A DNA stretch of 63,907 nt, the filler included, from Basidiobolus meristosporus CBS 931.73 (taxonomy: Eukaryota; Fungi; Basidiobolomycota), in NCBI GenBank assembly GCA_002104905.1. It is 3 parts of 3 records of this genome, joined end to end, with 100 filler letters (N's around TTAATTAATTAA, not from the genome) between each part and the next. Parts side by side here need not be neighbours in the genome. Positions count along the whole stretch, not along the records: positions 55,114 to 63,907 come from MCFE01001334.1; 2 more parts are not named here. One strand, given 5' to 3'. Under the pieces are notes generated by a model, which searched no databases, had not been told where the DNA came from, and saw only the letters and a program-made list of their open reading frames with translations. Every line of letters starts with the position of its first letter. The first letter of the stretch is position 1. Position numbers and translations under genes: made by a program. Positions 55,114 through 61,967 of the stretch are shown piece by piece.

Positions 55114-56185
55114 TGTTGATCTCGAGTATCACCCAGGTGGGAAGTTCCGCTGCACTCGAGAGTTCCTGTGTCTTGTGGCGAAGCTTCTGGATGCGCTCGA
55201 AGAACAGAGCATTCTCCACACTGAAGTCACGGAGGGAGAATCGCTTGAACACCTCGAACTGCTGTGGATCCTCGACCATAGACTCGAATGAGGCCATGCT
55301 GGAGCTTCTGCTGCCTCCAGCCCCGCCTCGGAGTGCGTTGACGGCTGGGAGAACAATGCTGAAGCAATGGCTGATCATCAAGGCGACCACACTCCAGTGG
55401 GCAGCTGGGAAGATCTTGATCACATCTCTGAGTGATGGCAGTGCAGCGAACAGGATGTACAGGATGAAGGCAATCACACCCAGGGTGAAGTCGGCCATGA
55501 GCTCACGCTTGATTCCATAGGCATCATCGACACCACGGAGCCAGGTGATGAACAGAGGGCACAGCACGAACACATAGAAGGCGGAGGTGAGATAGACAGG
55601 GATGAACTCCCAGCCAACCAGGCAGTTCCCCAAGGCCATGGTCGGGGTGATCTGGAACTTGGTGGTGAACGCTTGGACCAGCAGGGTGAGGGCCATCTGG
55701 AAGGACAAGGCACCGATGATCAGTCGGACAATGTAGTTTGTGGTGAACTTCTCGCGGTGCTTGTAGTACCAGTTCTCATCCAGGACCATGGTAGGTGAGG
55801 AGGTGATGGTGGGTTTCTCTGAGCCGAGATCCACATAATGATCCGCGCTGGAGCCAGCCACTAGTTTGGCCTGGCTGAAATGGTACAGGAAGGCAAGTCG
55901 CATGAACCGACCAGCGACCGAGGTGAGCCACAGCGGCATACCAATGGACGAGACCCAGATGTTGACAAAGCAGGGGAAGCTGTCGTAGGTCGGCTCTCGC
56001 CCGAGATAGAGAGTGGTGACCAGCGAGTTACCGATCACCATGAACACCGAGAGGGTTATACTGCGGTAGCGAATGGCCGGCGACTGATACTGAGAGATGA
56101 ACAGGAATGTGGTGGAAATGAGGAAGAAGTTCCACCCAATGGTTACCGGGTAATAGAATTTCTGGGATGTGGTCCAGCTGTCCAT
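55114..56185 (-). CDS. 7TM-RGS protein, copy 1 (3' end lost in the gap)
   Basis: Near-identical to copies 2-4 up to the gap. Confidence 0.88.
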
Positions 56186-56805
56186 TTGTCAGCGATAGAT
56201 CTATTGTAGAGGCGAACTGGGGATCCTGTAAATATCTATTGATAATAGTGGACAATAGAATGCGTTATGGCCATCAGCTAGACATCGGACTCTGTTATAT
56301 ACCAAGCCAGATATGCGATGAATCATGCCTGCAGGGGGAATATTCATTTCTGCGTCATTACCCCGGAACTGGTTCCTTTGATGGTCGGAGTATTGCATGA
56401 GCTGCTCCACATTGTACTTCCTTAGAGGATAAGTGCATGAAAGAAATAGCGCTCACCGGCATTTTCATTTTGTAATGTGGACATTTAGGGTATGCACATG
56501 CAATGGCTACCAGGGGATTTTTCCCAATGTTAAGCCCAACATGGACGTCAGCGGGGTTTTCATGCAGCATAACTTCAAAAGGAACGCATTGTGCAACTTG
56601 ATCGCGGTCGTCCGCCACTTTTGTACGTTAGGTGAAATTGATCCGTGCGGCTGAATCAAAATCCTGGCTAGTCCCAAGTGCAATAAGGCAGTGCAAATTC
56701 ACGTATCAAGTATTAACTGGTTTTAAAAGTCATTTATTGCCTGCTCAGTAGCTACTTGAATAATACAATTTTGGATCTATAAGATATATGGTTCAAACCA
56801 TAAGA

Positions 56806-58092
56806 TTAGATCATGGTTTCAGCTAGACTCTTCTGCCCCATCTTGACAAATCTGGGATAGGTGTATCGGAATATCAAGGTGCGGACCTCGCTGAATGCCC
56901 TGTCAAAGATGTCCAGGCGGATGTCGTTGGACTGGAACCTACGCCGGATCTCTCGCACCGCTGACGCTTCGAGGTTCAGCTCGAACTCTGAGTCAGTCGA
57001 GATGAAGGTGTTGTAGATGCTGTTGATCTCGAGTATCACCCAGGTGGGAAGTTCCGCTGCACTCGAGAGTTCTCGTGTCTTGTAGCGAAGCTTCTGGATG
57101 CGCTCGAAGAACAGAGCATTCTCCACACTGAAGTCACGGAGGGAGAATCGCTTGAACACCTCGAACTGCTGTGGATCCTCGACCATAGACTCGAATGAGG
57201 CCATGCTGGAGCTTCTGCTGCCTCCAGCCCCGCCTCGGAGTGCGTTGACGGCTGGGAGAACAATGCTGAAGCAGTGGCTGATCATCAAGGCGACCACACT
57301 CCAGTGGGCAGCTGGGAAGATCTTGATCACATCTCTGAGTGATGGCAGTGCAGCGAACAGGATGTACAGGATGAAGGCAATCACACCCAGGGTGAAGTCG
57401 GCCATGAGCTCACGCTTGATTCCGTAGGCATCGTCGACACCACGGAGCCAGGTGATGAAGAGTGGGCACAGCACGAACACATAGAAGGCGGAGGTGAGGT
57501 AGACAGGGATGAACTCCCAGCCAACCAGGCAGTTCCCCAAGGCCATGGTCGGGGTGATCTGGAACTTGGTGGTGAACGCTTGGACCAGCAGGGTGAGGGC
57601 CATCTGGAAGGACAAGGCACCGATGATCAGTCGGACAATGTAGTTTGTGGTGAACTTCTCGCGGTGCTTGTAGTACCAGTTCTCATCCAGGACCATGGTA
57701 GGTGAGGAGGTGATGGTGGGTTTCTCTGAGCCGAGATCCACATAATGATCCGCGCTGGAGCCAGCCACTAGTTTGGCCTGGCTGAAGTGGTACAGGAAGG
57801 CAAGTCGCATGAACCGACCAGCGACCGAGGTGAGCCACAGCGGCATACCAATGGACGAGACCCAGATGTTGACAAAGCAGGGGAAGCTGTCGTAGGTCGG
57901 CTCTCGCCCGAGATAGAGAGTGGTGACCAGCGAGTTACCGATCACCATGAACACCGATAGGGTGATGCTGCGGTAGCGAATGGCCGGCGACTGATACTGA
58001 GAGATGAACAGGAACGTGGTGGAAATGAGGAAGAAGTTCCACCCAATGGTTACCGGGTAATAGAACTTCTGGGATGTAGTCCAATTATCCAT
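56806..58092 (-). CDS. 7TM-RGS protein (GprK/AtRGS1-type architecture), copy 2, 428 aa, intronless
   Basis: Seven hydrophobic segments (including FPCFVNIW...GRFMRL and DDAYGIKREL) followed by an RGS box (FSVENALF, ELNLE, FDRAFSEV, TYPRF). Confidence 0.92.
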   Translation of the reverse strand: MDNWTTSQKFYYPVTIGWNFFLISTTFLFISQYQSPAIRYRSITLSVFMVIGNSLVTTLYLGREPTYDSFPCFVNIWVSSIGMPLWLTSVAGRFMRLAFLYHFSQAKLVAGSSADHYVDLGSEKPTITSSPTMVLDENWYYKHREKFTTNYIVRLIIGALSFQMALTLLVQAFTTKFQITPTMALGNCLVGWEFIPVYLTSAFYVFVLCPLFITWLRGVDDAYGIKRELMADFTLGVIAFILYILFAALPSLRDVIKIFPAAHWSVVALMISHCFSIVLPAVNALRGGAGGSRSSSMASFESMVEDPQQFEVFKRFSLRDFSVENALFFERIQKLRYKTRELSSAAELPTWVILEINSIYNTFISTDSEFELNLEASAVREIRRRFQSNDIRLDIFDRAFSEVRTLIFRYTYPRFVKMGQKSLAETMI

Positions 58093-60035: not shown

Positions 60036-60680
60036 TGATGGTTATTATTTCTACTCTGGAAGAAGCTTGTGGATCTAAGAATTCTATGAAGTTTACTAAC
60101 TTGAGATGTAGACAATGATCATTCTTCAGCCATCGAGGCTTATTTTATACTAGGTCAGATACTCAGTGAGACTTTGATGTAGGGGTGCGCTCATGTAGGT
60201 ATTACTACCTCACAGTAAAATGGGGATATTTCTCACCAACTTTGGGTTACAGTGGTAGTGCTGCTCTCCTATGTATGGAGGCTAGTTTCACCAAGATGTC
60301 TTTATCTAAATTGGTAGAGCCATGTCAGTGCGTATTGCTGAAGATTTTCACGAATAGACGACTTGATGTTTTCTAGATTAGTAGATGGATTCGGTGATTC
60401 ATATCACTATTGCGGTCTGTGCCATTTATAAGAGAATCGTGTGGATGGTTGATAACGAGATTCGAGGTTTTCTTCGGGTGACCTACTTCTGTCATGATCC
60501 AAAGATTCATGTATGCTCCGTGCATATATAGTCACTATATTTGGTAAGTCGAATTTATTGGGGGCTATGCTTATTACACTTGGATTACCAACTTCTTTAC
60601 GGCACCCCAAGTGGTGGATCCGATCATTGGATGGTCAATTAAATAATATATTATCTAGTACTTGGCTATTGTTGAATATC

Positions 60681-61967
60681 TTAAATTATGGTTTCAGCTA
60701 AGCTCTTTTGACCCATCTTGATAAATCTGGGATAGGTGTATCGGAACATCAAGGTGCGGACCTCGCTGAATGCCCTGTCAAAGATGTCCAGGCGGATGTC
60801 GTTGGACTGGAACCTACGCCGGATCTCTCGCACCGCTGACGCTTCGAGGTTCAGCTCGAACTCTGAGTCAGCCGAGATGAAGGTGTTGTAGATGCTGTTG
60901 ATCTCGAGTATCACCCAGGTGGGAAGTTCCGCTGCACTCGAGAGTTCCCGTGTCTTGTAGCGAAGCTTCTGGATGCGCTCGAAGAACAGAGCGTTCTCCA
61001 CACTGAAGTCACGGAGGGAGAACCGCTTGAACACCTCGAACTGCTGTGGATCCTCGACCATAGACTCGAATGAGGCCATGCTGGAGCTTCTGCTGCCTCC
61101 AGCCCCGCCTCGGAGTGCATTGACGGCTGGAAGAACAATGCTGAAGCAATGGCTGATCATCAAGGCGACCACACTCCAGTGGGCAGCTGGGAAGATCTTG
61201 ATCACATCTCTGAGTGATGGCAGTGCAGCGAACAGGATGTACAGGATGAAGGCAATCACACCCAGGGTGAAGTCGGCCATGAGCTCACGCTTGATTCCGT
61301 AGGCATCGTCGACACCACGGAGCCAGGTGATGAACAGAGGGCACAGCACGAACACATAGAAGGCGGAGGTGAGGTAGACAGGGATGAACTCCCAGCCAAC
61401 CAGGCAGTTCCCCAAGGCCATGGTCGGGGTGATCTGGAACTTGGTGGTGAACGCTTGGACCAGCAGGGTGAGGGCCATCTGGAAGGACAAGGCACCGATG
61501 ATCAGTCGGACAATGTAGTTTGTGGTGAACTTCTCGCGGTGCTTGTAGTACCAGTTCTCATCCAGGACCATGGTAGGTGAGGAGGTGATGGTGGGTTTCT
61601 CTGAGCCGAGATCCACATAGTGATCCGCGCTGGAGCCAGCCACTAGTTTGGCCTGGCTGAAATGGTACAGGAAGGCAAGTCGCATGAACCGACCAGCAAC
61701 CGAGGTGAGCCACAGCGGCATACCAATGGACGAGACCCAGATGTTGACAAAGCAAGGGAAGCTGTCGTAGGTCGGCTCTCGCCCGAGATAGAGAGTGGTG
61801 ACCAGCGAGTTACCGATCACCATGAACACCGAGAGAGTGATACTGCGGTAGCGAATGGCTGGCGACTGATACTGGGAGATGAACAGGAACGTGGTGGAAA
61901 TGAGGAAGAAGTTCCACCCAATGGTTACCGGGTAATAGAATTTCTGGGATGTTGTCCAGTTGTCCAT
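60681..61967 (-). CDS. 7TM-RGS protein, copy 4, 428 aa
   Basis: As copy 2. Homology starts at the ATG at 61967; the ORF-track extension to 62096 begins at TTG. Confidence 0.92.
   Translation of the reverse strand: MDNWTTSQKFYYPVTIGWNFFLISTTFLFISQYQSPAIRYRSITLSVFMVIGNSLVTTLYLGREPTYDSFPCFVNIWVSSIGMPLWLTSVAGRFMRLAFLYHFSQAKLVAGSSADHYVDLGSEKPTITSSPTMVLDENWYYKHREKFTTNYIVRLIIGALSFQMALTLLVQAFTTKFQITPTMALGNCLVGWEFIPVYLTSAFYVFVLCPLFITWLRGVDDAYGIKRELMADFTLGVIAFILYILFAALPSLRDVIKIFPAAHWSVVALMISHCFSIVLPAVNALRGGAGGSRSSSMASFESMVEDPQQFEVFKRFSLRDFSVENALFFERIQKLRYKTRELSSAAELPTWVILEINSIYNTFISADSEFELNLEASAVREIRRRFQSNDIRLDIFDRAFSEVRTLMFRYTYPRFIKMGQKSLAETII

Follow-up and report, generated by a model that had tools for sequence, protein, structure and literature searches.

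Results

A tandem array of near-identical genes

We analysed a tandem array of near-identical, intronless genes from the zoopagomycete fungus Basidiobolus meristosporus CBS 931.73 (assembly GCA_002104905.1), each of which is predicted to encode a protein with a seven-transmembrane (7TM) part followed by an RGS domain. The array lies in the last piece (positions 55114-63907) of the window, the whole 63,907-nt stretch of DNA that was analysed; this piece is the complete 8,794-bp contig MCFE01001334.1 and contains no N. The assembly was built from PacBio reads only (PMC7466969). An earlier examination of these letters without database searches (the sequence-only reading) had described four intronless copies on the same strand with start-to-start periods of 1907, 1943 and 1932 bp, an arrangement that we recovered exactly. 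All four copies, c1 to c4, lie on the minus strand. Three of them are full, each an uninterrupted open reading frame (ORF) of 1287 nt encoding 428 amino acids, and the fourth, c1, is cut by the contig end. The coding sequences (CDSs) and spacers are, in window coordinates:

55114-56185, minus strand: c1, CDS nt 1-1072, the rest lost at the contig end; ATG at 56185; 98.0-98.2% identical to c2-c4
56186-56805, minus strand: spacer s12, 620 bp, the 3' flank of c2 and the promoter of c1; found only in this haplotype
56806-58092, minus strand: c2, intact 1287-nt CDS, 428 amino acids
58093-58748, minus strand: spacer s23, 656 bp, the 3' flank of c3 and the promoter of c2
58749-60035, minus strand: c3, intact 1287-nt CDS, 428 amino acids
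60036-60680, minus strand: spacer s34, 645 bp, the 3' flank of c4 and the promoter of c3
60681-61967, minus strand: c4, intact 1287-nt CDS, the first gene of the array

Across all pairs of c1 to c4, the CDSs are 97.4-98.2% identical. Copies c2 and c3, for which a manual count had given about 25 differences and six amino acid changes, differ at exactly 25 of 1287 nt, and six codons carry a change of amino acid. The mean divergence of paralogues at synonymous sites (dS) is 0.073, with a ratio of nonsynonymous to synonymous divergence (dN/dS) of about 0.05; 80% of the variation falls at third codon positions, and the ratio of transitions to transversions is 58:13. As the sequence-only reading had noticed, the variants are shared in a patchwork: site 1009 specifies His in c1 and c3 and Tyr in c2 and c4, and the Thr and Ile at sites 1096 and 1221 are unique to c2 among all 12 copies in the assembly. 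The Ser2 variant of c1 is also present in the inverted copy of the sister scaffolds (g5/hA, described below).

Identity ends at the borders of the CDS

The resemblance between copies begins at the start codon and ends at the stop codon. With the copies laid in ungapped register, mean pairwise identity is 0.2-0.4 before the CDS and leaps to 0.85-1.0 with the A of the ATG, in six different 5' flanks, and drops to about 0.27 at the first base past the stop, in six different 3' flanks. The abrupt borders that had been reported from inspection are exact to the base on all of these flanks. The 620-, 656- and 645-bp spacers had been called almost unalignable, and this also holds: global alignments among s12, s23, s34 and the region upstream of c4 score at the level of shuffled sequences (z between -0.3 and 2.0).

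Local alignment of the six promoters and the six 3' flanks found nothing above chance beyond a 15-mer and three short matches. The three matches, of 20-30 nt and above shuffles, join the promoter pairs c4-g6 and c3-g6 and the 3'-flank pair c4-c3 (g6 being a copy on a sister scaffold); two of them cover a TATA-like element. The 15-mer occurs in the promoters of c1 (56261-56275) and c2 (58166-58180), on the minus strand and equally far from the start codon. It sits 75-90 nt upstream of the start codon in promoters that are otherwise unrelated, where shuffles lead one to expect 0.02 matches, and it could be either a candidate shared regulatory element or the last relic of common ancestry.

A second haplotype and its structural differences

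Further copies lie on two sister scaffolds of the same assembly, the 134-kb scaffold MCFE01000196.1 (loci L002 and L003) and the 18-kb scaffold MCFE01001066.1 (locus L001). Of the 12 members of the protein's 90% cluster, eleven lie on three scaffolds of B. meristosporus, and the other, P0029, is a partial protein from Basidiobolus ranarum; delimited independently in the DNA of B. meristosporus, the CDS copies number 12. The 134-kb scaffold has six array copies, followed by a gene with an RRM domain and a DUF7492 gene. The 18-kb scaffold holds hA, a copy that is partial and inverted, and hB, a full one, followed by the same RRM and DUF7492 genes. The sequence-only reading had suspected that a gap might hide more copies. 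The answer turned out differently: the contig simply ends inside c1, and the sister scaffolds show an array of six with one member inverted. The six, in the coordinates of L003, are:

6126-7412: g1
8058-9344: g2
10001-11289: g3
11943-13230: g4
13733-15020: g5, inverted
15783-17069: g6

The reverse complement of the contig is colinear with L003 4177-11288, at 98.3% identity over 7.1 kb with the spacers included, so that c4 pairs with g1, c3 with g2 and c2 with g3 as positional alleles (or homeologues). Judged by their flanks, c3/g2, c4/g1 and g6/hB are unambiguous alleles. The 1-2% of differences between haplotypes consists almost entirely of substitutions, with few indels, which indicates that the haplotypes are real and distinct. 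The contig is a second haplotype of the six-copy array on the 134-kb scaffold. The alleles of s23 are 98.9% identical and so are those of s34, both without gaps; differences between allelic spacers amount to 7/645, 7/656 and 8/753 sites, or 1.07%. These data show that the spacers are stable and not fast-evolving.

The two haplotypes also differ in structure. The 134-kb scaffold carries s23 twice (L003 9345-10000 and 11290-11942), the two copies being 99.85% identical with one mismatch and three gap bases. The second of these follows g3, in the place where c2 is followed by the unrelated s12, and both breakpoints lie inside CDSs; no counterpart of s12 was found on either sister scaffold. The outermost variants of the CDSs follow their flanks: T is present at site 9 in all copies preceded by s23, and A1257/G1260 in c3 and g3, each of which has s23 after it. 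An unequal crossover or a long conversion tract across the spacer would explain the doubling of s23. We rejected the idea that g3 is a simple g2/g4 hybrid made by one unequal crossover; its ends agree with the variants linked to the flanks, the 5' end being c2-like and the 3' end c3-like, but its interior is a patchwork.

The inverted copy g5 lies in a region (L003 13231-15782) where the tail-to-tail spacer measures 502 bp and the head-to-head one 762 bp. This copy (hA on the 18-kb scaffold) shows the same homogenisation as the direct copies, which argues that exchange works between inverted repeats too.

Six single-base frameshift indels were seen among the copies of the sister scaffolds. Copy g3 has three of them, two being insertions and the third a deletion; g4 and g5 each have a single insertion, and hA has a single deletion. 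Most of them lie outside long homopolymers. The called products of g3, g4 and g5 have 471, 417 and 408 amino acids, and these gene models presumably avoid the frameshifts, which are either real young pseudogenizing changes or PacBio consensus errors.

Calibration against Basidiobolus ranarum

The B. ranarum contig L004 holds the 5' 683 nt of a copy, and the divergent gene upstream of it encodes a cysteine-rich protein of 231 amino acids (L004 1216-1911, minus strand). This protein is homologous to the pacifastin-like ORFs beside c4 (described below) and is intact, apparently with three repeats of the pacifastin kind. The conserved pacifastin-like neighbour identifies the L004 copy as the positional orthologue of c4/g1. 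Nevertheless, the L004 copy is equidistant from c4, g1, c3, c2 and g6 (14.5-15.3% of nucleotides, dS 1.06-1.19), and so paralogues cluster within species, as had been predicted for conversion; this was shown for position 1 only. In a maximum-likelihood (ML) tree, the 12 copies of B. meristosporus all fall into a single clade that excludes those of B. ranarum.

The orthologous intergenic regions (586 vs 572 bp) have only a 51-nt patch in common, around the TATA-like element, and the paralogous spacers of the array share less than that patch. Set against this orthologous region, the divergence of the spacers would be of the same order as the species split, about 15 times the silent divergence of the CDSs.

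Another B. ranarum contig, L005 (JASJQH010010449.1, 2255 bp), has an 858-bp spacer between the 3' part of one copy and the 5' part of the next, so that copies stand in tandem in B. ranarum too. The L005 copies are 18% diverged from the L004 copy. The two ends of L005 overlap in 111 nt of identical CDS, and the contig has the look of a single 2.14-kb tandem unit collapsed during short-read assembly.

These comparisons bear on the possibility that the whole 1.9-kb unit was duplicated in tandem recently and that the CDSs are alike simply because they are young. A lineage-specific expansion of this sort would also place the B. meristosporus copies in a single clade apart from B. ranarum, and one spacer, s23, has indeed been doubled recently on the 134-kb scaffold (99.85% identity). 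At a dS of 0.07, however, spacers duplicated together with their genes should be about 93% identical; they do not align at a matching divergence but score as shuffled sequence. Rapid evolution of the spacers does not account for this, given that their alleles differ by 1.07% and that those of s23 and s34 are free of gaps. Nor does recent duplication predict the mosaic of variants, the excess silent diversity between alleles or the edge effect described in the next section. We consider it highly unlikely.

Recombination among the copies

In the ten full-length copies, all four gametes are present at 372 of the 666 pairs of informative sites, a failure of the four-gamete test in 56% of pairs, and the minimum number of recombination events according to Hudson and Kaplan (Rm) is 22. 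We simulated evolution without recombination using the same number of variable sites, placed at third positions only, under a two-state model, which maximises homoplasy. The four-gamete failures averaged 5% in these simulations, with a maximum of 39%; the observed 56% was never reached. Tests resembling the pairwise homoplasy index (PHI) and the neighbour similarity score (NSS) were marginal, with P = 0.06 and 0.035 for full-length copies and 0.018 and 0.010 for the first 740 nt. Because shuffling is near complete, we relied on the four-gamete count against simulation over these two tests. The 12 copies give a star-shaped ML tree, with g5/hA as the sole resolved allelic pair.

Comparison of alleles is also informative. 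At third positions, 59 of 1959 sites (3.0%) differ between alleles, compared with 1.07% in spacers (Fisher P = 1.4e-5) and 1.22% in all noncoding DNA (P = 6e-7); silent allelic divergence is 2.5-2.9 times higher in the CDSs than in the spacers. For 72% of the allelic differences in CDSs, both states are found in other paralogues. Shared states together with an excess of silent divergence between alleles are what non-allelic conversion into alleles predicts. Variation is, in addition, concentrated at the ends of the CDS: 14 of 60 sites are variable in the outer 30 nt at each end, vs 59 of 1224 inside (odds ratio 6, P = 2e-6). Such an edge excess is expected if a conversion tract needs homology on both sides.

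The GC content of third codon positions (GC3) is 0.75 in the array, 0.69-0.70 in related genes at loci L007 and L006, and 0.57-0.63 in two neighbouring genes, a comparison of few genes that touches on the question of GC-biased conversion. The high value in the array relative to its two neighbours, together with the strong purifying selection on the protein, could be taken to mean that selection alone, through extreme constraint at the level of codons or mRNA, holds old copies at 98% identity without any exchange. Yet the dS of about 1.1 between species shows that synonymous sites are free to change, and four-gamete failures in 56% of site pairs require exchange. We give selection alone next to no credence.

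A second locus with the same pattern

Locus L007 (MCFE01000221.1) carries a tandem 7TM-RGS pair (6001-7317 and 7909-9225) that encodes identical proteins of 438 amino acids and is 75% identical to the array at the nucleotide level. The two CDSs are 99.24% identical; they differ at ten sites, all synonymous, of which three fall within the final 10 nt. Homology between the two units runs 99 bp upstream of the CDS at 93% and ends at the stop codon. This pair indicates that the process recurs in the family, and its 5' border shows the gradient expected of eroding DNA homology.

The same gradient bears on an RNA-mediated route, in which a processed transcript of one copy recombines, as complementary DNA (cDNA), into the others and replaces their ORFs. 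That every copy is intronless and that homology is restricted to the transcribed, translated part would both fit this route. A cDNA template, though, would bring 5' and 3' untranslated regions with it, and in the array homology is lost with the very first base outside the CDS, upstream as well as downstream, in six flanks. Moreover, an Rm of 22 in 1.3 kb needs many short exchanges and not the replacement of whole ORFs, and the upstream homology at L007 is typical of DNA homology that is eroding. ORF replacement through cDNA is very unlikely.

We also considered an artefact of assembly or polishing, in which the PacBio consensus mixed reads among copies, homogenising the CDSs and scrambling their variants. 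The reliance of the assembly on PacBio reads, the 1-nt frameshift indels in four sister-scaffold copies and the near linkage equilibrium without long tracts are all in keeping with this, the last because random mis-assignment of reads would give it too. On the other hand, the two haplotypes were assembled separately, so differences of about 1% were resolved, and the 1.3-kb CDS lies between unique spacers that anchor long reads. The ORFs are clean in all four copies of the contig, and the third-position share of the variation, the dN/dS and the transition bias are those of real evolution. Mis-polishing predicts neither the enrichment at the edges nor the pair at L007. An artefact of this kind is unlikely.

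The predicted protein has a 7TM part and an RGS domain

In the 428-residue protein, Pfam finds the RGS domain alone (PF00615, residues 299-417, 47 bits, E = 3.9e-12) and no match to 7tm_3 (PF00003). An AlphaFold2 model based on an alignment of 20 sequences (mean predicted local distance difference test score 82.5, predicted template modelling (TM) score 0.79) places predicted helices before the RGS domain at residues 6-31, 43-66, 72-117, 149-173, 192-215, 225-248 and 261-285. Foldseek matches the membrane part to the transmembrane domains (TMDs) of class C G protein-coupled receptors (GPCRs), namely TAS1R2/3, mGlu1, CaSR and GABA-B, with TM-scores for the 7TM bundle of 0.53-0.58 normalised by TMD-only targets. 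The C-terminal part matches RGS8, RGS16 and RGS4 (root-mean-square deviation of about 2.1 Å, TM-score 0.76-0.88 normalised by target), and RGS chains of the Protein Data Bank match by sequence as well. The label "7TM-RGS" is correct for the predicted architecture, and the likeness of the modelled 7TM part to class C is at the level of the fold only.

Residues E324, N325 and N373 are invariant or nearly so in the family alignment, and they belong to motifs that align with RGS domains of solved structure, the S-x-E-N-x-L-F and E-x-x-L motifs aligning with those of GAIP and CG5036; the RGS motifs had been described as intact, which agrees with this conservation. The protein is a putative receptor with a predicted GTPase-activating RGS domain whose Gα-contact residues are conserved.

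More distant relatives (P0015, P0017 and P0021) carry PF00003 together with RGS, and an Atlas cluster of Zoopagomycota proteins likewise combines 7tm_3 and RGS. The Atlas neighbours include RGS-bearing clusters of Endomyxa, Chytridiomycota and Ascomycota. A word-based search returned relatives only in Zoopagomycota (Basidiobolus, Syncephalis and Piptocephalis), along with a few metagenomic or unnamed records.

The edge of the array

Beyond c4, the contig continues with two features:

61968-62553, no strand: divergent intergenic region from c4 to the pacifastin-like gene, 586 bp; the left edge of the array
62554-63075, plus strand: unannotated gene for a pacifastin-like secreted cysteine-rich protein, two ORFs; a synteny anchor outside the array

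The two ORFs of the pacifastin-like gene are at 62554-62757 and 62776-63075, both on the plus strand. The first opens with a signal-peptide-like segment, followed by a cysteine-rich stretch. When the ORFs were searched separately, the second matched Pfam Pacifastin_I (36.7 bits, cutoff 27.9), a domain of serine-protease inhibitors that is familiar mainly from arthropods. At the allelic position, the 134-kb scaffold has no called gene. Rfam and tRNA scans over the whole contig gave no matches, and neither did a Pfam search of the ORFs in the spacers.

Discussion

Our analysis points to an old tandem array under concerted evolution, in which the CDSs have very probably been homogenised by conversion limited to the coding region. 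The sequence-only reading had proposed an old duplication with conversion confined to the CDS, and this proposal is upheld by the contrast between spacer divergence and dS, the four-gamete failures, the excess of silent differences between alleles and the enrichment of variants at the edges.

The history probably ran as follows. The units would have been duplicated long ago, at a time of the order of the split between B. meristosporus and B. ranarum or earlier, and their promoters and 3' flanks would then have drifted to saturation. Purifying selection, at a dN/dS of about 0.05, would have slowed the divergence of the CDSs, so that the copies stayed usable as templates for recombination with one another. 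Frequent short tracts of non-allelic conversion, with occasional unequal exchanges, would keep the CDSs within about 2% of each other and their variants mosaic. Because such tracts cannot enter non-homologous flanks, the homogenised block would end exactly at the ATG and the stop codon; the outermost 30 nt at each end would be converted less often and would retain more differences. The outcome is one essentially identical protein behind at least six unrelated upstream regions. This regulatory diversity may be put to use, and one putative receptor and GTPase-activating protein (GAP) would then be driven by several promoters.

Several points weigh against this history. A GENECONV-like longest-run permutation test, a check that the sequence-only reading had suggested, found no individually significant tract (best pairwise P 0.07, global P > 0.97), and with variants near linkage equilibrium the length and direction of single tracts are not demonstrable. 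The lack of significant tracts is compatible with many short, old, overlapping ones. The comparison between species is limited to position 1, the B. ranarum contigs being short, and the age of the duplications is read from the saturation of the spacers, not from dating. Finally, the PacBio-only assembly and the six frameshift indels make some consensus error possible in the repeat region.

The exact borders on twelve flanks might also be more than a passive outcome of eroded homology and have their cause in the ORF itself, by way of mechanism or of selection: either template switching on a translated or processed intermediate of ORF length, or the active upkeep of a single receptor protein behind six unrelated promoters whose regulatory roles have been divided among the copies. 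If this were true, the array would be a sensor with condition-tuned dosage, in which conversion blocks divergence of the protein. We regard such a tie to the ORF as improbable and favour concerted evolution through conversion limited to the coding region. This is a conventional and well-known process in a new gene family and organism, and no new kind of mechanism.

As far as literature searches show, both the gene family and the zoopagomycete host are new for CDS-limited concerted evolution; searches for Basidiobolus together with RGS found nothing specific. The case is unusually clean, with six unrelated flanks per side, exact borders, two haplotypes and a positional orthologue, and could be used to estimate how often conversion occurs, how long its tracts are and how homology edges act in a fungus of an early-diverging lineage. 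A further point is the expansion of 7TM-RGS genes in Basidiobolus, with 12 near-identical copies and other tandem pairs, which bears on environmental sensing by a gut-associated fungus. For annotators and users of the genome there is a warning: gene trees of the 7TM-RGS family will not mirror the history of its duplications.

Concerted evolution limited to the CDSs of tandem duplicates is known from the Amy and Hsp70 genes of Drosophila and from the γ-globins of primates, and the literature treats tandem arrays of Trypanosoma brucei as well. The array resembles these cases in its near-identical CDSs with diverged flanks, its mosaic of variants, its clustering within species and the strong purifying selection that preserves homology. 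It differs from them in three respects: in six flank contexts the borders fall, to the very base, at the ATG and the stop codon, one member is inverted, and two assembled haplotypes reveal conversion as an excess of silent allelic diversity.

The protein, too, has known counterparts. The plant protein AtRGS1 is a 7TM-RGS hybrid. Hybrids of this kind are also known among fungi, as class VI or GprK-like receptors (PMC5008803, PMC10794492, PMC12842992). The array protein has the same order of parts as the GprK-like receptors and AtRGS1, an N-terminal seven-helix domain and then a C-terminal RGS domain, a likeness in predicted architecture; in contrast to them, its 7TM part resembles class C TMDs. 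It is also very compact, with 428 amino acids and no extracellular domain. Compared with the class C GPCRs themselves (mGlu, CaSR, TAS1R and GABA-B), it lacks the Venus-flytrap and cysteine-rich ectodomains. Its C-terminal RGS fusion is likewise not a feature of animal class C receptors, where RGS proteins are recruited in trans, as in the GPR158-RGS7 complex, which was among the Foldseek matches.

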